NCBI GenBank assembly: GCA_047495785.1
Contig: JBLDXI010000021.1
Coordinates: 1,240,001-1,304,000 of the forward strand
DNA from: Lepidodermella squamata
Taxonomy: Eukaryota; Animalia; Gastrotricha
DNA: 64,000 nucleotides
Reading direction: 5' to 3'
In this document: piece by piece, positions 14,882 through 53,756 of the stretch
Position numbering within the stretch: the first letter of the stretch is position 1
Layout of the letters: each line of letters opens with the position of its first letter
Notes under the pieces: generated by a model
The model's database searches: none
Seen by the model: only the letters and a program-made list of their open reading frames with translations
What the model was told of the DNA's origin: nothing
Made by a program: the position numbers and the translations under genes

Positions 14882-17130
14882 ATGACGTCTACCGATAAAG
14901 CCTCCGTGCGATTATTATTTTGGCCAAGCAACTACCCGACGATTAGCAGAATAAAAACTGGCGATTTGCACTCACAGCATCTTGCTGCATCCGATAACGC
15001 GCGTTTGTCTGATATTCTCGCGCCACGCCAAGACAATAATATGGATATGGAGAAGATGAAAGACCTGGCTTCGTCGCCAGGTGCGGCTTTGAAAGACAAA
15101 GTTTTATCCCTTTTCGATCGAGTTCGAAACGGCGAACAAGAGGATGATAGCGCCGGCATTTCGAAACAAAATTCCTTGAAAATTCTTGCGGCTAACGAAC
15201 AACTCCGCGGAACTTTTGCGAAGGGTGAGTCATATAAAACCTTATGGTCATTCTTTTACGTCGTATTTAATTCAAGATGTTGTATCGACTGAGCTTGACG
15301 CCAAGCTTTCAAAGGAGCTGTTAGAGGCCACGATGGTCCTATGTCACAGCTATTTGTGCACTGAGTACGATCGTAGCGAGAAGGTGATCAATTTCCGCCA
15401 CCCATCCATCCTGAGACAGGACATAGGCGATCTGTTGAAGATGGATGAGCCAAATCCTGTTGACGTAGCCCAGTTGCTACGGGAAATTGACGTCGTCTTA
15501 CGAAATTGCGTCCGAACCGGCCACCCGCGATTCTTCAATCAAATATCTAACGGAATCGATCTGGTTTCCCTGATTGGCGAATGGATTACAGCTACAGTGA
15601 ATACGAATATGTAAGCCTTGCACTATAATTATAAGCCTAACAGCTGACTTTTAACATTTTTCGAAAGGTTCACCTATGAAATCAGCCCTGTTTTCGTTCT
15701 TATGGAGGATGCAATGATTCGGACGATGCAGCAAATAGTAGGTTTTAATCCGGAAACCAGTGATGGAATTCTGGCACCAGGCGGTACCATTTCAAACCTC
15801 TACGCTGTTCTGGCTGCTAGACTGCGCGCTTGCCCGGAATTGCGACTCAAAGGTCTCAACGCTGGTCGTCCCTTGGTTTTATTCACATCCACCCACGTAA
15901 GCATAGAAACTCCTTAATTTCGATGAAATTGATAAATCAATTATTTAGAGCCACTACTCCGTCCATCGATCCGGCGTCATTGCAGGCTTGGGATTGGAGA
16001 ATGTAGTCGAGATCGGAACTGACAATCGCGGCAAGATGAACATCGCCGAATTGGAAGAGGCTATAAATCGCGCAAAGGAACAAGGCAAAATGCCATTTTT
16101 AGTTGTTGCTACCGCTGGTACTACTGTCCTTGGCGCCTTTGATCCTATCAGGAAAATAGCTGCAATCGCCAAGGCTAACAATATGTGGCTTCACGTTGAT
16201 GTAATTTTCCCGACTTTAACAAATTATTGGGTCTATTTATCGATTTTTGTAGGCAGCATGGGGAGGTGGAGCTTTGATCAGCGATAAGCACAAGTACCTT
16301 CTCGACGGAGTTGAATTGTAAGTAAAATTTCAATATTTTTTTCGCTCTAATTTGATTTCCAATTAATGCTCACAGGGCCGATTCAGTCACCTGGAATCCC
16401 CACAAAATGATGGGTGTTACCCTTCAATGTTCGGTTTTTCTGACAAGGGACAAGGTTAGGAATTTTCACTTTTTATCCTTACAATTTCTTATGTAAGTTC
16501 AATTTTTTAGACTGTTCTTTGCGAGATGAATGCCATGTCGGCGGAGTATCTGTTCCAACAAGACAAGCACTACGACGTCTCGTATGACACCGGTGACAAA
16601 TCGCTGCAGTGCGGGCGCCACAATGACATCTTCAAGTTTTGGCTAACATGGCGATCGAAAGGCCGCCAAGGATTCGCGGAAAAAATCGATGGCTTATTTG
16701 AGCTTGCCGCGTGAGTTTAAACATGACGCGTTTTTTTATTGATTATATTTTAATTAATTTTGCCTTCAGTTTTGCGCAAAGTGAGATTAAACGTCGCGAG
16801 ACCCATTTCCGTCTTTACCTGCCAGAAATCGAATGTCTGAACATTTGTTTCTGGTACATTCCTAAATGCTTATTGAAAGCTACCGGTTCAGTTCAGCCAC
16901 TTCCTTATCCCGATGATCCGGCTCTGCTCGATCGAGTCGCGCCTTTTATCAAGGCTAAAATGATGGAACGCGGTTACACTATGGTTGGATATCAGCCCTT
17001 GGATGAGAAGCCGAACTTCTTCCGCCTAATTATTTCCAGCAGCGCTGTAACCAAAGAGGACATTTTATTTTTGATCAACGAAATCGAAGAAATTGGAAGC
17101 AAGATCACCCTTAACGATCTTCAAGGCTAA
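14882..17130 (+). CDS. GAD: Glutamate decarboxylase (PLP-dependent group II decarboxylase)
   Basis: [55 protein letters not shown] lysine [27 protein letters not shown]. Eight exons. Start is 14882 or 15041. Confidence 0.92.
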
Positions 17131-17848
17131 ACATTTTGCTTGATGCGAGCATAATATTTGACAAGAATTCTAAACCCGTGTTTTAAGCCAAATTTTTCCA
17201 TTATTTAATTTGGTGTCGCATGTTATACCGGTGTCCCTTAATTTTACGGGTTTCACATTATCTCGGATACCTCTCGGCCATAACAATTTGTAGTTTTTCT
17301 ATAACGTGCCACCTGTCCCAAGTATTTGCTTCTACTCACCAATTTATTGTGTTATTCCAATAAAAGTAAAAGTTCCAGTTTGTGAGCGCGGCTCATCGTT
17401 ATTGATGAGTCATTAAATTTTGTTGGCAAAACTCGGCCGAGCGTTTAGAGCGTTTCCTAAACCAGGTTATATACCTTCATTTATGTTATTTTAGGGAAAG
17501 TAGCTAGGTAAATTGAGTCGCTGCGGGCAAGATGTGCGACGGCAATAAAAATAATATTTTTTCGCATCGCAGGTGTGCGATACCCAGCAGCAGCAGCTGG
17601 CAACAATGCGCGCAAAAATTGTATGGCAAATAAAAACGCGTTTCGAGCGTCTTTTTATTTTATACGCAAAACAGGCCTGTTTCGCCGCGGTCGAACAATG
17701 CGTCGTTTATTGTTGTTTTTACCTCTGAAAAATAACAGGCTGAAGCGGTTAAACAATGCCGCGGTTGTGTCATTCATCTGATGTGATGAACAGCCCGGCT
17801 AATAAAACGCTCCCTATTAACAGTTGAAACGTTTGATCATTTCGCGCA

Positions 17849-20358
17849 ATGAAACAAAAACACTACACTATTACTGTCATAGCTGCGCTGATTTCAGTTT
17901 TCATCCGTCAAATCGATGCGGCATTTTACAAATCGGGAGCCGCTGCTGATTGGTTAGCAGTTGGCAACAGCATTCCGTACTACGTTGATCCTAGTTAGTT
18001 CATGGATACATAAAGTGCCACCTTAAATATATCGTGGATTTTTTTAGATCTTAGTTCAGATGTTCAAGTCAATGTCGACACGACTCTGATCTACGTTTCA
18101 GGCCTAGTTCCTCGCCTCAATTTCGCGAAAACCTTAGTTGCAGCTAATGCTGTCATATCCTTCCAACTGGATAATACTCGAGCTGTGTAAGACTTACCAT
18201 GTTTTCAATTTCGCTTTTAAATTTGAAGTCTAACAGTTGCGAAGATGAGAATGTTCAAATCGGTAAAGTTTCCGGAGGGGTGACAAGAATTTATATTACC
18301 GAGACGAACTTGGCCGCGTGCGGTACAAAAGGCTGGATAATGCACTTACTACTTCATGCCCTTGGTTTTTACCACGAACACCAGCGACCGGATCGGGACA
18401 ACTACATTTACATCAATTACGCCAATAGCAAGGCAACTTCAGCGATGAAATCAGCCTTACTCGATGTTATCAGATCGACTTCAACCGTTGTTAGAGGAGC
18501 CTACGATCTAGCGTCGGTTACGCATTACGATTCGATAGCCACTGCCTATACTCTTAAGGTAGAAATCTTGCCTCAAATTTCATATTTTAAAAAGCAAACT
18601 TCGAATAGACGACTATAGTAGCTGTACCTCCCGAGCTGTATTCTCAGTTATCGTTTGGCCACGCTGTTAGTATTTACTACTCGAGCGATTCGGTACTTTC
18701 GATTGGAGATTTGGAAACTCTGAGGTTCCTATTTCCATCCACAATTGCGCCTCCCGTCTGTAAGACCGGAAATTCTTCTTTACCTTCACATTTTAAATTT
18801 TAAATTTTAATAGCCGGTGCCCAAGTTTGTCAAAACGGCGGTATTTGGTTGGACTGGTGTATTTGCAAGCCTGGCTTCACTGGGAGATATTGCCAAGACA
18901 GTAAGACATTTGAAAGGAATAATATCATAAAGATCAAGGATTCAATCAATTTTTCAGTATATTGCCCAAATAAATGTCAAAACGGTGGAACTTGCCAAAT
19001 TTCATCGGCTAATGGCTTGCCCAAGTGCTTATGTCAGACTGGTTTTAGCGGGAATTTCTGCGAAATTCGCGGCTCGAATAACACATGCAACTGCCCGTGG
19101 TGGAGTTTATGCGACACCACCTTATCTACCTGCATTTGCGATCCTTTCCCATATTACGGGCCAACATGCGCGAATCGAATTTCAGGCATAATTCCTTCAA
19201 CTAAAGCGCTTCCATCGCCAAGCACTTACCCAACGAGTTCATCTACTACGACGGTAACAAGTACCAGAGTTTCGACTACGAACGCCCCGGCGACCTGCGA
19301 CGGATCTTTAGTCGCTCGGCCGAGACCAATGACTACAACCAGCAGTTACATTTACCTTCGAATCGGGCTTAGTGACGTCACATTCCTGGCTGATTACGCT
19401 GATTTAGGCAGTTTTAATACCGTCGCCTTACAAGCCTTTCTTACCGAGACTTTACTCTATGATTTTCAAAGACACTCCAGCGCCTCTTTTCTATCGATTT
19501 TGCTGACCAATATTCTACCTGGGCCGTCGAGTTGTACTGTTGTTGATTTTCTCGCAAAATTCGGCCAGCCTTTGGGGCAGAATCAGGTGGCGAATATTGT
19601 TCAGGCAATATTTTTGAAGGAAAGGCTCAACGGCACGGCGACGAATAGAACGTGTAGGATCGGTTCGGTTTTCTACATCGATTCCGGTAATCGAGTGTTG
19701 AACGCAGCCTCGCCGTGCGCTGTCTACGAGGCTGAAAGGGTGTGTAAAAATGGCGGCAGTTGTTCGATTTCCGGCTCGGTGCCCGTTTGCAATTGCCCGA
19801 ATGGGAACTTCACAGGAGCTTATTGCGAGATTGCGATTCTTTCAGCCATCGACAACTCCTGGCCTACGCTTCAGATTATTTTAGTCACATTTGGCGCGAC
19901 TATCGTCTTGCTACTTTTCATCCTGCTCGTTGCGCTGATGAGGCAATATGTTGGGACAAATCCAGCTTGGTAAATATTAGTTAACCATGGGATAGACTGA
20001 AACATTGAAAAATCTTTTAATAGGTTGGCTCCAGTTGATCGAGATGCATTCGCTTTCGGCCATAGATGGTACGAAAATCGCCGATTGCCCGTGGAAGCTC
20101 ATCCTACTACCAATTATCTGGTCCCAGTTTTGACGCCTGCCGTAAGTATTTTGTAATATCATTGGAACAACAGAATTTTATTAATTTAATTTGAAAAAGA
20201 ATAAACAAATTCAGCCGTCAAACGTGAAGTTCAACAATCAACAAATGACGTCGAAAAAGGCCATCGTGCCAGCTCCGATCTTGCGCAACAAACCCGGCCA
20301 TCAACGCCCTGGTCAGATGACAAATGGAACGTTGAATAAATATATGCATAAATACTGA
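17849..20358 (+). CDS. Pseudo-astacin / 3xEGF / mucin / SEA-like / EGF / TM protein, copy A
   Basis: Signal peptide, [25 protein letters not shown] (18343-18375), YDLASVTHY, LSIGDLETL, EGF repeats, S/T stalk, SCTVVDF, EGF, TM (LQIILVTFGATIVLLLFILLVALM) and a cytoplasmic tail. Confidence 0.85.
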
Positions 20359-20790
20359 AAATCATCAAAAATAATTGTCATTTTTTGTAAAGCCTACAAG
20401 TATTACCTATAATAATAAAAATTGAATAATACATAACTAATAACTAATAATAGCAACCCAGGTCCCCTTTCCACACAAGTCTCGGGTCAACGGCCATGTC
20501 CTCATGATCACAAGACCTAGTCACCACCACATCCATTTACCCAAGGTCAATAGGTATGTCGCAGAGGCCAGTGCATGAACAGCGTCATGTTCCATTTATT
20601 CCTTTTAACTTCAGGCCGAAAGACGCAGAATTTTGAACCCATTCTTAGTCCACAAGCATAACCTATAAACTAATGTTTTTTCGGGATTTATCGTTGCCGG
20701 TTTAAGGAGGGTTTGTCCTCGTTCCGATTTTATCAAAATCACCACCCAGAAAGAAAATCTTCTTGAAAATTCTGTATAAAATCTAGGAAT

Positions 20791-23173
20791 ATGAATTCAC
20801 TAATTTTTAAGATTTTATTGATCGGCGCTTTGCTGACTGGTTAGAATTACCCTAGAAGTTTTCTCTATACCTAACAGTTTTTGTTATAGGGTTTGAGGCG
20901 GCACTTCAAAAAATCGGAACCGCTTGGGGTCCAGTCATTAGATATAACGTCGACCCGTGTAAAAATTTAGGATTTAGGAAAAAGTGTGAACTCCTTGCTC
21001 AATTTATTTGACAGATTTATCGTCTACAACGGAATCGACTATCAATACGGCTTTGACTCATATTACTTCGTTCGTTCCGGGAATTATCTTCGTCCGCGGA
21101 AATATCGCGCCCTATCTCAACTTTGTCAGAGGAACAGCCACAGCGACCACTGTATTGTACGCATTTAAACTCTATCATTAACAGCTAACCAATTGGCTTG
21201 ACAGTTGCGAGGATGAAAATGTCAAAATCGGCCCGACTGCTACCGTATTTGCCTGAAAATAAGCCCGGCTTATATTCGAGTACTATTTCAAAATTAAGGC
21301 GTTTTCAGCAAAATAAATTTAGAAGCCCGGGCTTCTAATATGGCCCCGGGCTTATAGCTAAGTACTTTGCATTTTTTGGCAGTAATAAGTCTGAAAATGA
21401 ACTTAATTCAATTCAAAAATCTTTATTTGTCATTTAAACCCAGCCCGTCGCTAGCAGGATATAATCACATTGGAAAACATCAAATGATATCAGGTGGCAT
21501 GTAAAACGGTGTGTAAAACGGTAACACATCCACCTGAGTCTTCGAACTTGTGAGAGCATGAGGCTCGGTAAGAAGACAGGGAGCGGCGTGCTTGATGTGA
21601 AAATCGTCCCATTATAATACATTTATATGAATTTCTGTGAAATTTATTGAAAATAAGTTCAAAATGATAATATTTATTGCATTAATTTGAATATATCGCC
21701 TCAGATTTTGATTTCGATTTTGGTACCGAAATTAAGGCCCACCCCGATATAGAAGCCCATGGGCTTGTGTTTGAGACCGGGCTTATTTTCAGGCAAATAC
21801 GGTACTGTCGGTACGGACATCGTAATCTACGAAGGTCTCACCACCTCGAACGGCATTAATCTGAAATGCAACTCGAAAGGCTGGATTCTCCATCTTGTAA
21901 CATTCATTGCATTCATTGCACAAATTCAATGAAAATGCGTTCTATCTCTCTGAAATTCCCATTATAGATCATGCATGCGCTTGGTTTTTACCACGAGCAC
22001 CAGCGTCAAGATCGTGATAGATACGTCTATGTAAACACTGGCAATTCTTTACTTTCAGAGGCAGCAACAAGTATGACAAAAGCTAAGATTTCGATGATTT
22101 TATTATTTATCTCCCATGTGTTAATAGCCGCTTTATTTTCACCGCAATCTGGCAAGAAATCTGGGAAATACGATTGGCAATCGATCACTTATTTCCATTA
22201 CAACGCCGGCGGGAAGGTCTCCGGTATCAAGCTGGTACGAACACCAGTTGTTTCTGCACCTTTAATATAACCCTTTGTAAAGATGACAACAGTTGCCGCT
22301 GTTCCACCAGAATATATCTCTTTGAAATCGTACGGCCACGCCACGAATCCAGACTACACCGATCATTCATCGCTATCGCGAGGGGACATTACAGCTCTAC
22401 AGGCGCTATTTCCGAGCGTCTCCGTACCAGCGCCAGGTAAATAATTTTTCGGTATTATCGGTTTCGGTACGTTGGTGAACAGTCGACCGCAAAAATTTTC
22501 GAATTCGCCTCATGAAATCGATCGATTAAGTTCGATGACTGGATAAAGGATAGGAAATGGCGTGATTCATCTACACGGCTCAGTTGGAATATAATCTAAA
22601 CGTCTTTTAGCTCCTCAGGTTTGTGCCAATGGTGGCACGTGGTATGGAAATTGGTGCTTATGCAAACAAGGTTATGCTGGTCGACTTTGCCAGGAAAGTA
22701 AGACTTTTCGATATTTTATTGCACGACAAATCAATCACCTATACTAAATTTTGCAGCTTACTGTATACAAGACTGTCAAAATAATGGATATTGCGCGATC
22801 AATTGCACATCAGGTCTTATGGGTTGTGTTTGCCCGCCCGGTTATTCTGGGTCAGCTTGTGAAATTGAGTCTATGAATGATTCCTGCCCAGGAGCTTGTC
22901 CGTGGTGGAGTGTTTGTGACGAGGATCTATCGACTTGCAACTGCGATCCCTATCCTTACCAGGGACCCACCTGCGCCGATCGTGAGTCCAATTGAAATTC
23001 CAATTGAAATTCAGAGTAATGAATGCATTATTACGATAGCCCTTTACGCTGTTCCTTCCACTTCGACTACGACATCGGCAACAACTTCGACCGCTCAAGC
23101 AAAAATGGCAAAAGACAGCCCGCAGCCTCCTTGGAAATTAACGTGGTTTCCACAGAATAAAAAAGATTCATAA
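20791..23173 (+). pseudogene. Pseudo-astacin/EGF copy B; MITE-disrupted and truncated before SEA/TM
   Basis: Exon-for-exon similar to copy C. A 560-bp MITE sits inside a coding exon at 21243. Homology to C stops after STSTTTSATTST (about 23092), with a stop at 23173. Confidence 0.8.
21243..21802. mobile_element. pogo/Tc2-like MITE
   Basis: Perfect 26-bp TIR CCGTATTTGCCTGAAAATAAGCCCGG and TA target duplication (21241-2, 21803-4). The equivalent site is empty in copy C (GGCCCGACTGCAACTGTCGGT). Confidence 0.92.
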
Positions 23174-23983
23174 AAATATTATACTAAAAATTAAAAAATT
23201 AAAATTAAAAAAAAAAGATTTGTAAAATCAAATGAATACAAAGATTCTCAATTACTAACCAACCCAATTTTTTTAGGATTATTATGCGTTGCATTGCATT
23301 AAACGGTAAAACTACCATTCCTGTCCTGAGTTCGCAGAATAAACCCGGTCAAACGCCTTGGTCGGAGTCAACAAATTAAAAGCTAAAAACAGAACGGCCA
23401 AAATGGAAAAATCATCAAAAATAATTGTCACTTTATGGTCACAAGAAAAAACTATATCAATACCTGTATTATCATCTGCGAAAAATAAACAACGTGGAAA
23501 AGAAATTACTGTATTTAACACTGGTTCTTAATTACCTGTGTAATCATAAAGGAAACGTTGTGTGTATGTGTTTCGGATTTTGTTTTTGTTTCGCCGTGAA
23601 ATTTCTTTTCTGCAGCTCAGAAAATACTCGCATTGTCTGCGGCGGCGCATAGCTGTATAGTAAAGCGTCTAATCGTTTGGCGTTGCGTCAATATACCGTA
23701 TGTCGCACAGGTCAGGTGCACGAACGACAGCGTCGTCTTGTTCTGTTTATTCGCTTTTAACTTCGGGCCGAGAGACGCAGCATGAAAAGAGGACGACGAC
23801 GACGACATTGAGCTTAAACACATCTCTCAGGCTGCAACGGAATGCACTATAATTTTGTTACAATTATAATACCCTAAGGTTTCACCTATGACAGTCGCTA
23901 TAAGACTCACCTTTTGCGTCGAAATATCAAAAGAAAATCTCCTTTGAATATAACCTGATTATTGTGTACCAAATTTAGGAAAA

Positions 23984-26690
<2,707 letters not shown>

Positions 26691-27380
26691 TGGAATTCGT
26701 TGAAAATGTTCTCAAGAAGGCGTGGTCTCAGGCCAACACAATTGATAGTATAAAACGTTCTTTTATTTGCAAACAAATTTTCGTTCTGTGTTTCGTTTTG
26801 TTGTCAGAGGATTATATTCGAATACACAATAAAAAAAAGAAATCTTCCTTAATTTTGAAATATATAGGTGATGATCACGGTGACCTCTAATAGCGTTATG
26901 TGTGTTCTACGGCTGCGGTCGATTTTTAAACAAATTTTCAGTCGTACTAGTGCGAGGTAACAGAGAGCGACGCGATGAGCGCGTACGCATGAGATAAAAT
27001 TTGGCGGACAAATACGGGCCTATATAAAACACAGTGTGAGCGCAAAAGTGCGCGCGCGCGCTTCAACTGCGCGTTGAATTTATAATATTATACTTATTCT
27101 CTATGCGAACGGCCTTACCTTTACCAAACCAGCGAAACAACGTTGCAAACAACGGCTAGCTGAGGTATACATATTGCTGTCATTATTATTACAACACATC
27201 GCGTTGCAGCGCATGAAGAGTGTAATTTCGGTCGACGAGTCTCGTCTTCTGCTCCCCTCTAAAATGTAGACACAAACGAGTGAAACGCGCATTGACAGCG
27301 GCAAAAGCGGTGGTCGCAACACAACAATAGCAGGTTTTTAGAATTTAACGCTCGCAAGTCTGCTTTTTCCCGCAATAGCC

Positions 27381-30205
27381 ATGCGTTTGTTGGCAGCGAT
27401 CGCCACTTTCGTGACTCTGATCAGTTCAGGTGAGCTTAAATGAGCTAATTTTTCGGTAAATCCCAATAATTGTTCATTCAGGTAACGCGGCTTATGTCTT
27501 ATCTCAGTACCTCAATTACAACCCATGGACATCGCCGATTCAATATTATATTGACTATCGTAAGAATTTTCGCACTGTAATTTGTGGAAATTAATTTAAT
27601 TTATTCAGAGCTTTCGGCAAGAACCCAATACATCATACCGATCGTCTTGAATCAGCTCACAGTTCTTGTACCTCAGCTTCAGTTTTCGACCTATTCATCC
27701 TACAACTCTGTACCATTCCCGTATTTACGATTTATGCTGGACAACAATCCGAATCTTTTCTTGTAAATTCTTGAATAATTATTTTCACTTAATTTTGATT
27801 ATTTGATTCAATTTTCAGTTGCGAAAATGAGACTGTGGCAATAGGGCAGAACATGACCGGATTGGAAACTTACATTTTCATAGTACAAAATAACTACATC
27901 GATTGCGGAACGCAAGGCTGGATCTTGCATTTGCTACTCCATGCCTTGGGATTTCTTCACGAGCACCAACGGCCTGATAGAGGAAATTATATTTACATAA
28001 ATTCGGGACATCTAAATACAACAATACCTTACACGACTCAATTGGGTTTGTACATCGATTAGGGCTGAAGATGAAATTAAATGTATTGCAATTAAATGTT
28101 TAGAATTGCTGTTGAATGTCCGAAACTCAGGCACTTATATGCCCCTTAATGACCCGAAATACGATTTGGCTTCAATCATGCATTATCATCATTCAGCTTT
28201 CGCAGTCGGTTCTGGCCGGGTAATTTTTTTGAATTAATGAAAGAATTATTTTACATTATTTTTTGCAGTCGACAATAATGTCATTACCACCTGGATATTA
28301 TAGCTGGCTATCTTACGGCCATGGGACAAATATAGCAGATGGTTATTCGGCCTCCTCGGTTTTGTCTTCCAATGATTTGGCAACTCTTCACGCGCTATTC
28401 AAAGTTCCTCGGCCGACTCAGCTAGGTATATTGTGATTTATTACAAAATTTAACGAATTTATCGACTTTTGTACTCAAGTGGGTCAATTTTGTTTGAATG
28501 GAGGAACCTTCTACAATTGGTGCCTGTGCCCACCCGGTTTCGGCGGCCGATATTGCGAAACTGGTAAAATTTAGAGCTTCCCTAAAAAAATTCATTTTTC
28601 CATTGATTTCTTACAGCAACCTGCTACAGAACGTGTAGAAATGGTGGTTCGTGTTCCCTGAGTACTGGCTTACCTGTATGCACATGTCCGACTGGATATA
28701 CCGGGAATTATTGCGAAATAAGTGGGTGTATCCAAATTGAAAATGCGATTTTTGTAATGACTTTGGTTAATTTTAAGATTTAAGCACATCAATTGGGTGC
28801 AGCTCGATCGGCGGCTGTCCGTTCTGGTCACTCTGCTCAACAAGCACCGGCACGCCAGTCTGCAACTGTGAACCGTATCCATATCAAGGAGTTAACTGCA
28901 CAATTCGTAAAATTTGTCCTATAAATTCGGCAATTTTTATTTTTTGCCTGATAGCTTTTGTCTACATTCCGACTACCTCACCGGCTCCGACTACGACGAC
29001 TGTGGCAATAATACCGAATAACCAAACGGTTTCGCCGACTCGAACGTTCAGTGTAACAGCAACAACGCCGCAAGTGACAACCCCAGTCGCCTGCACCTTT
29101 GGCCTTGTCATTCCTACGGCTAAGCCCCGCCCATTTTCAACCTCAACGCTTTACCTACGCTTGGCTTTGACTGATATCTACTACCAGCCTGAATTCGCGA
29201 ATTTGAACAGCACAAATACAACGGCGCTGCAAGCTTTTCTGTGGCAAGTGTTACAGATCGATTTTACGACGCAATCTCGCGGCAAGTTTGTCTCAATTAG
29301 CATCGTTGGGGTGCAGCCGCCTTATTGGGGCGAGTCAACATTTTTCTGGAACCCATCGCAAATTATTGCTGGTAAATAATTTCATGTCCGATTTTCACTT
29401 ATGACTGACTATTATTCAGCTTTCGGATGTATCATCGTTGATTTTATGGCTGTGTTTTCGGTTCCTCTAAACCCGAAAGAACGGTCTCAGGTGTTAATGG
29501 TAGCCGCATCTTACGCACGATCTCAAACGCCTGTTTTCTACGCCCGATTTGGCGACGTTCCGCTCATGTCAACTCGAGTCAGCGGCGTCGGCTACATTTC
29601 CCAACAAAATCTCGTGCTTTCAGACATCTCGGCTTGCACAATCTACGCAGCAGAAGCCGCCTGTAAAAATGGCGGCCAGTGCATGTCGAGCGATGGAATT
29701 AATCCTTCTTGCCTGTAATTTTTTCCATTTTTTCTTTTAATTTTTCCAAAATTTCCAAAATTTGTTTTTTAATTTTTAGTTGTCTACCCTACTTTTCTGG
29801 TGACTGGTGCGAGTACAATGTGACAAGATTCGCTAGTCGCGCGTGGCCCAACTGGCTCATCGTATTCGTCAGCATAGGCTGCGGCATTTTCCTGTTATCA
29901 TTCGGCGTCATCCTGGTTTATTGTTTGAAACGTGGCGCCCATCGATTTACAAACCGAATCTGGTTCCCGCCGACGCGCTTCCAGATGCACGCGCCTCAAA
30001 TTCGAAGGCGCATGAGGCCGTTTCGCATGCCGCGATTCGTTGCGCAACCCGATGTTCCGGTAAGAAATTTGCCTGATTTAATGCCGATTTTTCATGTAAT
30101 TTTAACTTGCAGTTCCCGTATCCAAGAACTTCTGGCCAACAGCCAATCTTCGCAACTGCGGCTCCAGCTCAAATGCCTCCGCCGTTTGTAGTGAGAAAAC
30201 ATTGA
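27381..30205 (+). CDS. Pseudo-astacin / 3xEGF / mucin / SEA-like / EGF / TM protein, copy D
   Basis: MRLLAAIATFVTLISS signal peptide, HLLLHALGFLHEHQRPDR (27928-27960), YDLASIMHY, LSSNDLATL, EGFs, GCIIVDF, EGF, TM, and an Arg/Pro-rich tail. Confidence 0.85.
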
Positions 30206-30664
30206 AAAAAGCGATATTTCTGATAAAAAAATGCGACACATCATGACATATAAAAACTTCAAAAATAAAAAGCGTTAAGTGCACCTACAACAATTTTTTC
30301 CTGTGGGAGTCTGCGCATGTGTTATTTTTTTCATGGCCACTCGGCAAATTTGTGTGCGAGCAGCGGCCACGTTTCACGCAAAAAAGGCTGGCAATATGTA
30401 GCAGGGGTTGGTGTTATGATGATGATGGCGCCGATGTTTGTAAAATGACGACATTACACGCTGCGGCGAGTTTTTTGAATGACGAGATGTGTTTACAAAA
30501 TTTACAACCACCTTAAAAATTATACGCATGCTATATATGTTGTGCGGCTTTTCTCGCCGTGCTCCCCCTTTTTGGCGGTCAACATCCTTTGGGCTCGCTA
30601 TACATATATTACATTGAGAAAAATAGCATTCATATAAATTAAATTTGTAAATTTTATAAAGAAA

Positions 30665-31934
30665 ATGGCAACCCCGCCAGGTTTTACGTTGCCGACGGAT
30701 TATACAATTACGACTACAACAGCTGTACCATGTATCGTAATGGCAGCAGCCCAGCCAAAGGCGTTGAACTACAGCGATCGAACTCTTTACTTTCGAATGA
30801 CGCTGATAGATTTATACTTTTTAACAAACTACCTCGTTACAACCAACGTTGAAACTCAGCAGTTGAACTACTTCATTCAAGATTCGCTCAGATCCGACTA
30901 TCAAGCATTTTCGAATGGGAAGTTCCTTAATGTAACCATTGTTACAGTTCAGCATCCACTCTGGAACCGAACCTCGGCGTTCAATAAATACCCAGTCCAA
31001 CCTGGGCCTGGATGTTCGATTGTCGATTTTTACGCAAATTTCACTGGCAATTTAACTGCATTAGAGCGGTCGGCTGTTGTTCAAGCAACTTACGCAAGAT
31101 CGTTAGGTTCCAACAGAGGTCGCGGGCCTTTAACTGGCCGATATGGGTCGAATCCTCTAGCGCAAACAAAAGTTGGCGAGGTTTACTACATATCGCCGTT
31201 AAATCAAGGCATGACAAGCGATGAATGTGGAATTTTGAATTGTAAATACATTTCTATTCATAGTTTTGTCAGCGGCGTCGCCTTGCGTTGTATTTTCAAA
31301 CGAGAATACTTGCCGAAATGGAGCCTATTGCATAACAATCGACTATAGACCAGCTTGCAGGTTCGTAATTCATCAACCATCCTAATTTTTCTGGATTTTT
31401 CTGTTATTTTAAGGTGCATACCTGGATATGAGGGGCAGTTTTGCGAGAGAACCAGTGGAGTATTCGGATCGCCCGAATGGCCCGCTTATCAGATAGTGCT
31501 CGTCGCTATTGGTGCTTTGGCAGTTTTTGCGATCGTAGTTTTGGTCTTCTGCTGCTGTTTCATGCGAACACATCGATTGTAAGCCGCCTTGAGAAAAATT
31601 TGAAATCATTACAGCTGAGATTTTTCAGCGCCCCACCAGCGCGAAATTTCGATCTGGACGTAGCTCGTCATCCTCACTTGGCGCAAGCTTACTTGGACTT
31701 TCCTCTGCCCGTTTTACCGCCAAAGGTAAGACAATTTGAAAAAATTGAGCAGTGATTAAATTTGACATTCGTTTTGATGTTTAGGAATACTTTATGGTCC
31801 CAAAAAGCAAACTTCAAAAGCGGCCCATACCAGACGCTTATCGGCAACAAAAACGGGTGATGGCACGGCACCTGCAGGGTATCCCGAGCGTCCATTCCCA
31901 TCATCAACGTTATAATCAATATCCTCCAGTTTGA
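30665..31934 (+). CDS. Copy E: SEA-like / EGF / TM only (no signal peptide or astacin domain found)
   Basis: LYFRMTL, DSLRSDYQ, GCSIVDF, VLSAASPC, EGF, WPAYQIVLV TM with CCCF, and a tail. The frame is intact across five exons if one intron is GC-AG. Confidence 0.7.
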
Positions 31935-32233: not shown

Positions 32234-34346
32234 TCATTTGCCAAGAAAGGCTTCGGGCCGATAGATTATTGCATTCAACCAGTCGATGAAGGCGTCGACG
32301 CGCGTATAAACGCCATATTTCATCTGCAAACCGCATCCGTCGCCGTGAGATACCAGCCTGAAAACTTTCAAATTGTCATCTACCTTAAAATTTAAGAAAA
32401 ATAATTACCCTTCAACAACCCATCGCAATGCGACTCGGCTCATCGTTTGCGTTTCGCCCTTGGAATTTACAATTTTCTCTGTGACAGTGTACTGTTCTTG
32501 GCACATAAGGGGCCCTCCAGAGTCTCCGCCACATGAATCCCGCCCGCCTTGCAGATAGCCAGCGCAGATTTGCGTCGCGGTAAGTTGGTCCGAATACGCC
32601 TTACGACACGCTGTTCGGCTTACAATCGGCACTCGCACCTCGCGAGGCCGAGCTGATCCAGTTGGATAGTGCTCGGCTAATTTTCCCCATCTAAAAAAAA
32701 AGAGTAAAAAATAATTCGCACTAATTATCCCAATATCAAGTTCGAAATACCCAACAACGGTGCACATTGTGCCAGCTTTCAGACCTCCGCCAACCTCTGG
32801 GACAGCCCCATTTGCAGCAGCTACTCTTTCACGCTCCGGAGGCGGCAAACAAGCGGGTATGATGAATTTGGAATAATTCAAATTTCGATCGAGTAAGATT
32901 AGACCGATATCAGAGTCGAAGTCATCAGGGTTGTAGCTGGGATGAGCAAAGATTGCGGCTGGTCTCAGCGTAACTTCGCCTATTTAAATAGAAAATCATT
33001 GTTTCATATTCAAAAATAATTCTTAAAAATTAAAAAAAATTCCAGCTTAATAAAAAAGCGTTTTCTAGCTTACCTGGGTCATATCTGTCGAGAGCATGCT
33101 CGCCGACTCGTATTGCAGCGACACGATCGAGACAATGAGCTGCTGTGAGCACCCATTGGCTTCCAATCAGCGCCCCTCCGCAAAATTGCTCGCCCCTCCT
33201 GTTGACTAGCACCACCATCCACGGCCACTTGCCACGCGGAACAAGGCGGCCACCTATTATCCGTGGCTGTTTTTGCGGCATTGACAACAGCTCACTGACC
33301 CCGCATTGAAATTTAGTAATAGGAGCTGGGGTTGGCGGGGTTGATAGCGAGTAATTGCCAAATGTTGGAAATGTCGTAGTGAGCATTGATGGTATCACAG
33401 CTGGTGGCAGTTGTCCGATGTCATTCGCCGATTTCGCATCATCGCTCACAACAACGACATCGCCGTCGATCATCGGCGTGGTGATCGGTTTTTCTGAAAC
33501 TGTGCTAGCCGGGGTGGGGCGCGTTGTAGTCGACGAGGCGTCCAGACACATTGTTGGCCTGCACCGGCGGCGGTGCAGAAGAACGTAGTCGCCGCAAATC
33601 GAAGCCATCGAACACACCCGGGTTCGCATTTGTGCGCAAATTATTGTCGGTTTGTAGTTTGAGGCCGATGAATCTACCAACTCGCAGGGTGACCAAGCCG
33701 ACCACTGGCCGAAAAACGTGGCAAAGGCTGATGAATTAGCCGCCAGTTCAGCATCCGGAGCGGGGGTTGTAGTAGTTGTGGTAGTAGAGACATTACGAAG
33801 TAGAACATCGAAATCACCGTATCGGTAATTGTTCGCAGTTCTCAGTGTTATTTTCGGTGGCCTCCGCCTCTGCTTTCTGAATTCCGTGTCGTACATTAGC
33901 GGTTCTTCGATGTAAACAGGTGTTAATTGCCGCCATAATTTCGACGGCTTTCGGAACGCTGACAAACGGCCATCACTGCCGAAGCTTACGAAAGGTGTTG
34001 AGCCCCAATGCCGGGTGAGCACGGGCTTTTGGCTGCAAACTCGTATGGTTTCTTTCAGTGAGCAGGGTCGGTATCGACGGACAACAGAACGCTGTTTCGC
34101 GTAAGCTTTGTCCATGCAAACCTCTCGGGAACAGGTCATAGGCAGCTCGCAGCGCCTGCGTCGAAACCGGGTGCAAGTCGCCGCGTCACAGGCGCTCCAA
34201 GGCCCCCAGGACCATTTCACGGGGCACCGATTAGGCTTTGGGGTCGTGAATAATGAGAAGTCACCTTCAACGCCTTCCTCGTAATAACTTTCGACCAGGT
34301 GAAAGACACATAGAAACAAAACGAAAGTTTGCACAACAAACATCAT
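32234..34346 (-). CDS. Secreted trypsin-like S1 serine protease with two TSP1-like repeats
   Basis: Signal peptide, WSWGPWSAC and GQWSAWSPC, activation site R|IIGG, catalytic triad LTAAHC / DSDIGL / GDSGGP, Asp189 in RDSC, and KYGVYTRV. Confidence 0.92.
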
Positions 34347-35504
34347 CGGCAGCACCACGATTCCGGCAAGTGTGAGCAAAAAATTGCAATCTTCGTATAG
34401 GTATATTTTACAGCATATTTTGTCCTGGAGCAAATAAATCGTGCGTGCACCTTATTATTTGCCGTTTGCTGTGTTTTACAAATAATTGTGCGCGAAATAC
34501 AAATCCATCGATATCACCGTCAAGACGTGTGTGCCTTTTTCCGATATAGCAGTGACGTGCGGCCGAACATGATCTTCAGCCTTCTCAGTTGTCTTTCGCG
34601 CAGCTTAATGACAGCGAATCATGAGAGTCATGTTGCATTTTTACTATTGATCATCAAGTGCGCAATTGTCGCACTAAGCGAAAACAAGCCACTACTTCAA
34701 CCTTGCTGGCTGACCGGCGCGAGATCGCCATCGGCCCAGGCGCTTTCACATACCTGATGAGAGCTTCAAATTCGTGCATTTCGTGTCGAAATGTAGGTAC
34801 GTGTGAAAGCTGAAAATTTCCGAACGATAGGAAAATCAGAACAGCTGAGTTGAAGCTTGAGCAATGAAATCTAAGATTGCGAACTAACGCGGTTCCTTAA
34901 TTTTTGTTCACTCTAGGGCGTCGCAATGAGTTCATACTTGATGTAGATTTGCAAATTTGTAAATTGTGTCCCGTTCCTTGAAACCCACGGAATGGCTTGT
35001 GTTCATGGTAAATGGAGTTGTGAATTTGATCAGTGAATCAGTTGATCCAAGCGATGGTTGAAAGCAATGTGTCGAACTTAAAGTCACAAGGTGAAAGTAG
35101 TAAATCTCATCAAATTATAAACTTAATAATTTATAATCCTGTGTCTCAAAGGCAATGTTATAGTTTGTATATAACACAGTATACCAATAAAAGGTTTTCT
35201 CTCTCAACAGTAAAGAATCTCCAAAAACGATGACCAAAGATTCCTCTTTCCTTTTAATCAGCAATCAGCATGCGTGAATAAAAATTTGTGATAACATTTG
35301 AGTCTTAGATGACTTCATTTATGTATTTTGAAGCCGTGGACGGTTCGAACAACCTTCGAATATCCACTAAATCGGTGTTCGAAAAGCTTATTAATGAATT
35401 TTTATGCCAAATTACAGACTTTTATTTTCAGAAAATTCCGACGTTATAAAAAAATGAAAGCAGTAAAAATCAAGGCTCGGCAGGCCTTTGATTGCGAGCA
35501 GTTC

Positions 35505-52465: not shown

Positions 52466-53756
52466 ATGACGCAGAATTTCCAATACACCGATATGATCAA
52501 TCCTGGTCCAATTAGCAACCAGTCCGGTTTCGTGAAGCGGGACGTATCGGAATTGCTCAATCAGATAATGTCCATCAATGACCAAACCCTGGATGCGGCT
52601 CAAGCCAAGAAGCAAGCACTCGGATCTCATCGCTACCGGCATGTACTCTATCAGGTTATTCAATCTCAATAATGTCGGAACCGTCTTTTTAACATTTTTA
52701 TATTCCAGGTATTATGCGAAATCAAAGAAAAAACCGGATTGATGATTCGAACTACCGGTGATGAAGACTTACCCGATGCTCAACTTGTAAGGCTTAACAA
52801 TATGCTTTACGCTGAGGGTGTCGCTGGTCCCGACGGTCAGGCAGCGACTGCAGTTGCGCAGCAACAGCAGAGTCCTCCTGACTCAGCAATCGAACATGCC
52901 GATTATCGGGCAAAGCTGGCTGAAATTAGGAGAATTTACCATCAGGAGCTGGAGAAATATAAACAAGCGTGCAATGAATTCACGAGTCACGTGGTGAATT
53001 TACTCCGTGAACAGAGTCGCACCCGCCCTATCCGGCAGCAAGAAATTGACCGCATGGTTGCAATTATTCGAAAGAAGTTCCAAGCTATTGAAATTCAGTT
53101 GAAACAATCAACTTGCGAAGCCGTGATGATTTTACGGTCCAGATTTCTCGACGCGCGGAGAAAGCGTCGTAACTTCAGCAAGCAGGCGACAGAAGTATTG
53201 AACGAATATTTTTACTCTCATTTGTCGAACCCGTATCCCAGCGAAGAAGCGAAAGAAGAACTGGCGAGAAAATGTGGTATCACTGTTTCTCAAGTATCTA
53301 ACTGGTTCGGAAACAAGCGAATTCGTTACAAGAAAAATATCGGTAAAGCTCAAGAGGAGGCTAATTTGTACGCCGCAAGGAACGCTGCCGCTCAGCAAGG
53401 TGGATCAGTCATGACCCGGTCGCCATCCCCTGGCCTAGGAACTGGAACTCCAGTATCTAGTGATGACGAAGATGTGCACAGCGTTGGTGGTGAATTGGAT
53501 CCAGCTATTGCCGCTCGAATTACGAGTGTAGTCCCCTCTGACGTCTCTAGCGCTGTCGGTCTTGCCCCAATGTTTACTCTGAGTCATATGTATCATCTTT
53601 CTGGCTACAATCTTTCAGAACAAGATCAGGTAAGACTTTAATAATGTTGTTACTGTGATTCCTAATTCGAATTTTCAGAATGCTGCTCTTTTGCAACAAG
53701 TGCAATCAAGTTCGCTGCAGAACGGAGCCAACCCACAAGGCCACCAATCGCTATAA
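52466..53756 (+). CDS. PBX: PBX/extradenticle TALE homeodomain protein
   Basis: PBC-A ([18 protein letters not shown]), PBC-B ([28 protein letters not shown]), and homeodomain [37 protein letters not shown]...[12 protein letters not shown]. Confidence 0.97.

Follow-up and report, generated by a model that had tools for sequence, protein, structure and literature searches.

A tandem array of astacin-fold genes lacking the catalytic glutamate in the gastrotrich Lepidodermella squamata

We analyzed a window of 64,000 nucleotides from the gastrotrich Lepidodermella squamata (GenBank assembly GCA_047495785.1, contig JBLDXI010000021.1, positions 1,240,001 to 1,304,000 of the forward strand), in which a tandem array of astacin-like genes occupies positions 17,849 to 31,934. 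Features are listed in Table 1 in window coordinates. A first-pass annotation of this locus had described four paralogues, A to D, in which the catalytic Glu of the astacin zinc motif HExxH is replaced by Leu, each time with a different codon. Spliced gene models bear this out for all four copies, and they add to the array a fifth, partial copy (E) that had been missed. Three of the genes (A, C and D) encode the full architecture, consisting of a signal peptide, an astacin-fold head, EGF modules, a Ser/Thr-rich stalk, a SEA fold, a further EGF, a transmembrane segment and a tail. The same architecture had been ascribed to every copy, but B has no SEA fold, fourth EGF (EGF4) or transmembrane segment, and E has neither an astacin domain nor the first three EGF modules (EGF1-3).

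The array, its transcripts and its relatives

The DNA of the window is eukaryotic, and its introns are very short. Gene models were obtained by reading the three frames and selecting GT-AG introns such that paralogous peptides stay in frame, which yielded complete models for A, C and D. All modeled introns of A to D are GT-AG and 48-73 nt long, save one 174-nt intron in B, and intron phases are common to paralogues. The splice inside the SEA domain of D is backed by the intron-free sequence of its orthologue D′, described below. A tblastn search with all five proteins revealed no extra copy or remnant between the genes or elsewhere in the window.

Two public runs contain the stretch, X1 at low depth and with the same sequence as the window, and X2, a DNA run that is 3-4% diverged; both were compared over positions 17840-23839 (genes A and B). 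X1 covers exons and not intergenic bins. Its pieces on the exons of A show 0 mismatches, one of them stopping exactly at the exon-4 donor (18759), and the zinc motif of A is spanned without mismatch. Two X1 contigs skip the 71-nt intron within the zinc motif of B, and one of the two has CCTA at the joint and so matches the spliced sequence of C exactly (CAC CTA|ATC ATG CAT). Since the spliced contigs read His-Leu, the transcripts are spliced as modeled and encode Leu, not Glu, at the catalytic position.

An exhaustive phmmer search with the core exon of A against 1.84 billion representative sequences returned two standout matches, P0001 (59% identity, HLILH) and P0009 (HLVMH, with the same EGF modules downstream). 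A word-indexed search with the 374-aa exon of A returned nothing, and a feature search of the ESM Atlas yielded no usable match. P0001 and P0009 lie on a single metagenome contig (L001), seen in three samples, which carries in order a pyridoxal phosphate (PLP)-dependent decarboxylase gene, A′, a second decarboxylase, C′ and D′, and is syntenic with the window. The motifs of these relatives are HLILH and SATHY in A′, HLVMH and SITHY in C′, and HFLMH and SVTHY in D′, and all three retain the SEA fold with a G-C-x-V-V turn, EGF4 and the transmembrane segment. The synteny, the shared architecture and the loss of Glu in this relative indicate that all of these features predate a deep species split. 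C has four introns between its astacin domain and EGF1, and D has several introns, that are absent from C′ and D′; because C and D have a number of the positions and phases in common, the introns were probably lost in the relative.

The proportions of synonymous (pS) and nonsynonymous (pN) differences are 0.77-0.98 and 0.15-0.46, respectively, in orthologue pairs. Among A, C, D and E, pS is approximately 0.75-0.85 (saturated) and pN is approximately 0.4 in the head, EGF and SEA regions, from which we conclude that the duplicates are old and constrained. Synonymous saturation is also the reason why these comparisons are given as pN and pS rather than as dN/dS, the measure proposed in the first-pass annotation for A, C and D. 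Constraint can be read in closer comparisons: gene A and X2 differ at 33 listed exonic positions, of which 30 are synonymous and three conservative (T/S, S/T, I/V), all four differences within its HLLLH motif being synonymous, and dN/dS between B and C is 0.20 in the head and 0.11 in the EGF modules.

These data bear on whether the array is simply decaying into pseudogenes. The structure of two copies would be in keeping with decay, with B carrying an exonic transposable element and lacking its 3′ half and E lacking its 5′ half, but the frames of A, C and D are intact over 8-13 exons, gene A is strongly synonymous-biased against X2, distant orthologues are intact and spliced transcripts are present. 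Decay of the array as a whole is therefore extremely improbable, and the earlier suggestion of a conserved family stands for A, C and D, for which decay is contradicted; B may well be decaying, and perhaps E.

Copy B ends after a short Ser/Thr stretch and a unique 26-residue tail, so that the earlier claim that every copy is membrane-tethered fails here. Its frame is broken by a 563-bp miniature inverted-repeat transposable element (MITE) with perfect 28-nt inverted ends and a probable TA duplication, and is intact once the element is removed. X2 depth over the MITE is 3-7 times that of its flanks, which indicates a multi-copy element family, and no second copy was found in the window. The intact frame without the MITE and the low dN/dS between B and C imply that B was under selection until recently; it is a truncated, recently disrupted copy of secreted type. 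An X2 contig spanning the site without the element was considered as evidence of an insertion polymorphism and set aside, because its junction letters are those of gene C and it may represent C mapped across the site.

Copy E has no visible signal peptide, and positions 30206-30664, upstream of it, contain no family remnants and no signal-peptide exon. We considered and rejected E as an alternative 3′ module of D, since D has its own transmembrane segment, tail and stop, and the only nearby AG acceptor upstream of the E frame is in phase 0, while the exon preceding the stalk in D ends in phase 1. A 55-nt interruption in E (31209-31263) is found in no paralogue; alignment to the paralogues is restored best if it is read as a GC-AG intron, whereas use of a GT donor lying 33 nt further on would lengthen the product by 11 residues. 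E is best described as a head-less copy and a candidate gene.

An astacin fold without its general base

The zinc motifs read HLLLH in A (Leu codon TTA), HL|IMH in B (CTT) and C (CTA), and HLLLH in D (TTG), with an intron splitting the motif between HL and IMH in B and C (in C, positions 24529-24576). A phmmer alignment to PDB chains places the HELMH of crayfish astacin under the HLLLH of A. As claimed earlier, the three zinc-binding His are kept in all four copies, and the motif Gly and the family Glu (HEH) are kept with them; with A′, C′ and D′ counted in, none of the seven sequences departs from the zinc-binding His or from HEH. The longer signature HEHQRxDRD had also been assigned to every copy, but its RxDRD portion is present in A, B and C and altered in D, which reads HEHQRPDRG. 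The Met-turns are SVTHY in A, SITYF in B, SITHF in C and SIMHY in D, intact in D only, as first reported. The Met is replaced by Thr in A, B, C, A′, C′ and D′, and the zinc-binding Tyr by Phe in B and C. The motif Glu acts as general base/acid in astacins (PMC9848320), which agrees with the role the first-pass annotation gave it.

Profile searches place the domain in the astacin family. Core exons of A, B and D were submitted to Pfam and match Astacin (PF01400) with E-values of 1.8e-19 (exon 3 of A), 3.9e-09 and 3.2e-10, respectively. To Pfam, the exon products of the family yield Astacin and then, on the following exons, EGF, and no other families. A profile of our own, built from 96 canonical astacin domains taken from database matches, covers the spliced proteins from residues 27-36 (a "W..G.IPY" start) to the end of the domain with E-values of 1e-25 to 1e-31 (for gene A, 2e-31 over residues 34-220). 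In this alignment the predicted end of the signal peptide (…A|A…) lies only about 10 residues before the start of the catalytic domain, as at the mature N-terminus of astacins, which leaves no room for a prodomain and bears out its reported absence. The core astacin architecture comprises signal peptide, prodomain and catalytic domain, with disulfides C42-C198 and C64-C84 and with E103 clasping the mature N-terminus (PMC9848320). In the array, C42 and C198 are gone and the C64-C84 pair is retained.

The astacin fold was modeled with AlphaFold2 (AF2) on the orthologue C′, whose core contains no introns, starting at about profile position 60 and using a 63-row alignment. The model of this partial core has a predicted local distance difference test (pLDDT) score of 77, and all of its structure matches belong to the astacin family, 23 of them at E ≤ 1e-5, with root-mean-square deviations of 2.4-5.3 Å over approximately 120-130 columns. 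In the proastacin structure 3lq0 the general-base position is occupied by Ala in the phmmer alignment, the Glu having reportedly been mutated so that the zymogen stays inactive.

It is conceivable that these proteins are still hydrolases, with another residue or the substrate supplying the general base, or with a non-peptide substrate. The intact metal site would fit this, and so would the retention of Leu or Phe at a position that does not drift freely. Yet astacin catalysis is described as depending on this Glu (PMC9848320), the latency prodomain that one would expect of an active protease outside the cell is absent here, and the equivalent of Tyr149 is lost in B and C; we regard continued hydrolysis as very unlikely.

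Substitution of the catalytic Glu by Leu is not peculiar to this family. Among the best 150 matches, HLxxH domains also occur in Paramacrobiotus, moth, Clavelina and jellyfish proteins. A FastTree phylogeny built on 174 astacin cores unites the window copies with A′ and C′ in a single clade (support 100); the other HLxxH proteins lie outside it, and the tree requires at least two to three origins of Leu. The proteins concerned include tandem astacins of Chilo and Choristoneura, the "astacin-like metalloprotease toxin 5" of Clavelina and a MAM/TSP1 protein of Sanderia, all of which, like those of Paramacrobiotus, share the Glu-to-Leu change and keep the His but have different architectures and are uncharacterized. 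Replacement of Glu by Leu has thus repeatedly given rise to modules of this kind, in more than one animal phylum.

In Paramacrobiotus metropolitanus, five large proteins (P0007, P0015, P0022, P0034 and P0060) contain two astacin domains, one active with HExxH and one with HLxxH, together with leucine-rich repeats. This tardigrade arrangement is an independent, uncharacterized pseudo-astacin architecture.

Stalk, SEA fold, transmembrane segment and tail

In A, C and D the head is followed by an EGF-like module with four Cys, a canonical EGF, a module with six Cys and the pattern "CxCPWW…CDPYPY", the stalk, the SEA fold, a canonical EGF, the transmembrane segment and the tail. The first module had been called an EGF, and a module is indeed present there, although with four Cys only. 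The stalk is 35-45 residues long and 60-70% Ser, Thr or Pro, and the domain that follows it comprises approximately 140-165 residues.

The label "SEA-like" given to that domain holds by predicted fold and not by profile: no exon product matches SEA (PF01390) in Pfam at E ≤ 0.1. In a search for relatives with a profile of six C-terminal halves, the matches among the 8000 candidates listed were to EGF only. An AF2 model based on six family sequences (pLDDT 84, predicted TM-score 0.81) has a beta-alpha-beta-beta-alpha-beta order (E21-28, H43-63, E68-78, E84-92, H98-111, E125-131). In a Foldseek comparison with the PDB, the six top-ranked structures (probability 1.0, TM-scores up to 0.69) are all SEA domains, from MUC16 and from the transmembrane protease HAT. 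As the six best structural matches are all SEA domains, the label is correct at the fold level.

MUC1-type SEA domains self-cleave at G|SVVV, with the Ser at the beta2-beta3 turn. In this family the turn reads G-C-x-[VI]-V-D in six of the seven SEA sequences (S-C in A), and its Cys is present in all seven domains (A, C, D, E, A′, C′ and D′), with a second invariant Cys approximately 80-100 residues upstream. Judging from the sequence, the turn Cys could serve as a nucleophile in place of Ser or as a disulfide partner of the upstream Cys.

The tail after the transmembrane segment spans 75-100 residues and is Pro/Tyr-rich. Tails are weakly conserved overall, with a (Y/F)-x-V-P motif common to A, C, C′ and E, and the tail of C also has a PPPPY stretch. 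Such motifs may be sorting signals or docking sites of WW/SH3 type.

One might suppose that this mucin-like chassis of stalk, SEA fold, EGF, transmembrane segment and tail is the functional core, and that the astacin fold is a cap or spacer with no specific ligand. Between C and C′, SEA plus EGF4 are indeed better conserved than the astacin core (77% against 59% identity), and copy E holds an open frame with the chassis alone. The relation is reversed in A/A′ (astacin core 60%, SEA plus EGF4 35%) and D/D′ (72% and 60%), and the zinc ligands and HEH that are common to all seven heads would not be required of a mere spacer, so we consider this explanation distinctly unlikely.

Comparison with known systems and proposed function

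The heads share with astacins (M12A, PF01400; crayfish astacin, hatching enzymes) the fold, the three His and Gly of the motif, the family Glu, RxDR(D), C64-C84 and a mature-type start. They differ from them in the Leu or Phe at the general-base position, the missing prodomain and C42-C198 pair, the mostly Thr-bearing Met-turn, the Tyr lost in B and C, and the fusion to a SEA/transmembrane chassis. Meprins alpha and beta, which are not known outside vertebrates, likewise present a type I membrane-anchored astacin domain with a membrane-proximal EGF, but they are active and zymogen-derived, carry MAM and TRAF domains and lack a Ser/Thr stalk or SEA domain; neither MAM nor TRAF was matched in Pfam by the exon products of the family. 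Transmembrane mucins of the MUC3/12/13/17 type have a Ser/Thr-rich region, SEA, EGF and transmembrane segment in the same order. Here, by contrast, the stalk is short (35-45 residues) and not a tandem-repeat PTS domain, the head is an astacin fold, the SEA fold has no Pfam match and its turn is G-C-x-V/I-V instead of G-S-V-V-V.

The closest functional analogy would be the inactive ADAM receptors and scaffolds (ADAM11/22/23, unc-71; PMC11266112), in which a dead metzincin head is likewise membrane-anchored, with EGF and transmembrane segment, and has a binding role. They belong to family M12B, and their zinc ligands are usually lost while the Met-turn and prodomain are kept, the reverse of what is found here; no exon product of the family matches reprolysin, disintegrin or ADAM Cys-rich domains in Pfam.

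A literature search on astacin pseudoproteases, inactive HExxH motifs and SEA/EGF/transmembrane combinations found no description of such a protein, and protein searches did not find this architecture, in agreement with the earlier statement that it is unrecognized among described families. A 2023 survey of astacins does not mention "SEA domain" or "mucin" and counted only sequences with an intact motif (PMC9848320), so that variants of this type were filtered out, and a review of pseudopeptidases lists dead ADAMs among those of M12 but no astacin (PMC11266112). Dead metzincin receptors are thus established for ADAMs, and we found none described for astacins. The family offers a concrete and testable case of the probable conversion of a protease fold into a binding module. 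Non-peptidase homologues are listed in M12A by MEROPS. Dead astacins as such are not new; it is this architecture, and a functional study of it, that were not found in the literature.

We propose that A, C and D are type I surface glycoproteins that display a non-cutting zinc astacin head, likely ligand-binding, on a SEA/EGF/transmembrane chassis, and assign this reading a probability of about 0.65. Removal of the signal peptide would leave a complete astacin-fold domain at the N-terminus, retaining the zinc site (three His and mostly the Tyr), C64-C84 and the Glu that would clasp the mature N-terminus, and having lost the general-base Glu, the prodomain, the C42-C198 pair and usually the Met of the Met-turn. 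Such a head would most likely bind a ligand in its cleft and leave it uncut, as a permanent trap for substrates would. The distance of the head from the membrane would be set by three EGF-type modules and the stalk, followed by the SEA fold, EGF, transmembrane segment and Pro/Tyr-rich tail. That the general base, the prodomain and the Met of the Met-turn have been lost, yet the metal ligands kept under selection over a deep divergence, argues that the zinc site serves a non-hydrolytic use. Zinc binding, the absence of proteolysis, the capture of a ligand and any SEA-linked signaling or shedding are inferred, and binding through cleft and metal would probably resemble in principle that of ADAM22/23.

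Several points weigh against this proposal. The case for a zinc-loaded, inactive head is made by analogy with other astacins, and the metal site may be weakened, given the change of the Tyr ligand to Phe in B and C and the absence of the Met in six of the seven Met-turns. The structure models derive from alignments that are shallow (six sequences) or cover part of the domain. The depth of X1 is low, and its identification as RNA is a guess of the tool used, backed by the spliced joints. The ligand-binding role itself is a prediction.

The heads could instead act as decoys or regulators, competing for the substrates of active astacins or soaking up their inhibitors and thereby tuning pericellular proteolysis. 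Inhibitors such as fetuin-B block the zinc site of astacins, and a retained cleft and zinc site would suit this role; complexes of fetuin-B with astacin and meprins (PDB 6ht9, 7auw) are among the matches of the C′ model. We judge it unlikely, since no inhibitor gene was identified in this analysis and the membrane anchor, conserved tail motifs and SEA fold suggest more than passive sequestration.

A bolder extension of the receptor proposal, possible but rather unlikely, is that the family constitutes a class of pseudoprotease receptors confined to this lineage, and one branch of a wider set of pseudo-astacins that radiated across the genome and serve in recognition. In these receptors a zinc-loaded cleft would trap a peptide or an Asp/Cys-bearing ligand and a SEA fold with a Cys nucleophile would release or force-gate the head.

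Table 1. Positions of the array genes, their domains and neighboring features in the window and in the syntenic metagenome contig L001
Feature	Sequence	Position	Strand	Description
Gene A	window	17849..20358	+	8 exons, 705 aa; signal peptide, pseudo-astacin, EGFs, Ser/Thr stalk, SEA fold, EGF, transmembrane segment, tail
A astacin-like catalytic domain	window	17921..18755	+	residues 25-251, exons 1-4; Pfam and own profile
A zinc motif	window	18343..18399	+	19 residues; Leu codon TTA at 18346-18348
A SEA-fold domain	window	19296..19712	+	AF2 model and Foldseek; Cys at beta2-beta3 turn
A transmembrane segment	window	19860..19940	+	hydropathy peak 3.1 over 19 residues
A cytoplasmic tail	window	20024-20358		
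Gene B	window	20791..23173	+	signal peptide, pseudo-astacin HL|IMH, EGFs, short Ser/Thr end; MITE breaks frame
MITE in B astacin exon	window	21241..21804	.	perfect 28-nt terminal inverted repeats, likely TA target duplication
Gene C	window	23984..26690	+	12 exons, 706 aa, full architecture
C SEA-fold domain	window	25642..26097	+	alignment; G-C-A-V-V-D at beta2-beta3 turn
C cytoplasmic tail	window	26420-26690		
Gene D	window	27381..30205	+	13 exons, 726 aa, full architecture; HLLLH 27928-27942, SIMHY, signature ending DRG
D SEA-fold domain	window	29092-29631		turn Cys
D cytoplasmic tail	window	30113-30205		
Partial copy E	window	30665..31934	+	SEA fold, EGF, transmembrane segment, tail; 350 aa open over 5 exons
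E SEA-fold domain	window	30731-31280		turn Cys
E cytoplasmic tail	window	31629-31934		
SEA-fold domain	L001	5618-6175		turn Cys
SEA-fold domain	L001	10964-11551		turn Cys
SEA-fold domain	L001	14089-14715		turn Cys
Intron comparison, C	window; L001	24399-25191; 9947-10501		
Intron comparison, D	window; L001	28104-28563; 13325-13903		
Decarboxylase exon	window	16711-17130		just upstream of A
PLP-dependent decarboxylase gene	L001	1415-3349		
PLP-dependent decarboxylase gene	L001	7243-8741		second copy, between A′ and C′
Serine protease gene	window	32405-34433	-	trypsin-like
PBX/extradenticle homeobox exon	window	52739-53641		

Two further features of the window lie outside the array. The trypsin-like serine protease gene, recognized by an exon with GDSGGP, has a long Ser/Thr-rich N-terminal exon with Cys/Trp-rich motifs. 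The product of the PBX/extradenticle homeobox exon is 90% identical to a metagenome protein and 60-80% identical to PBX proteins of molluscs, annelids and other lophotrochozoans.

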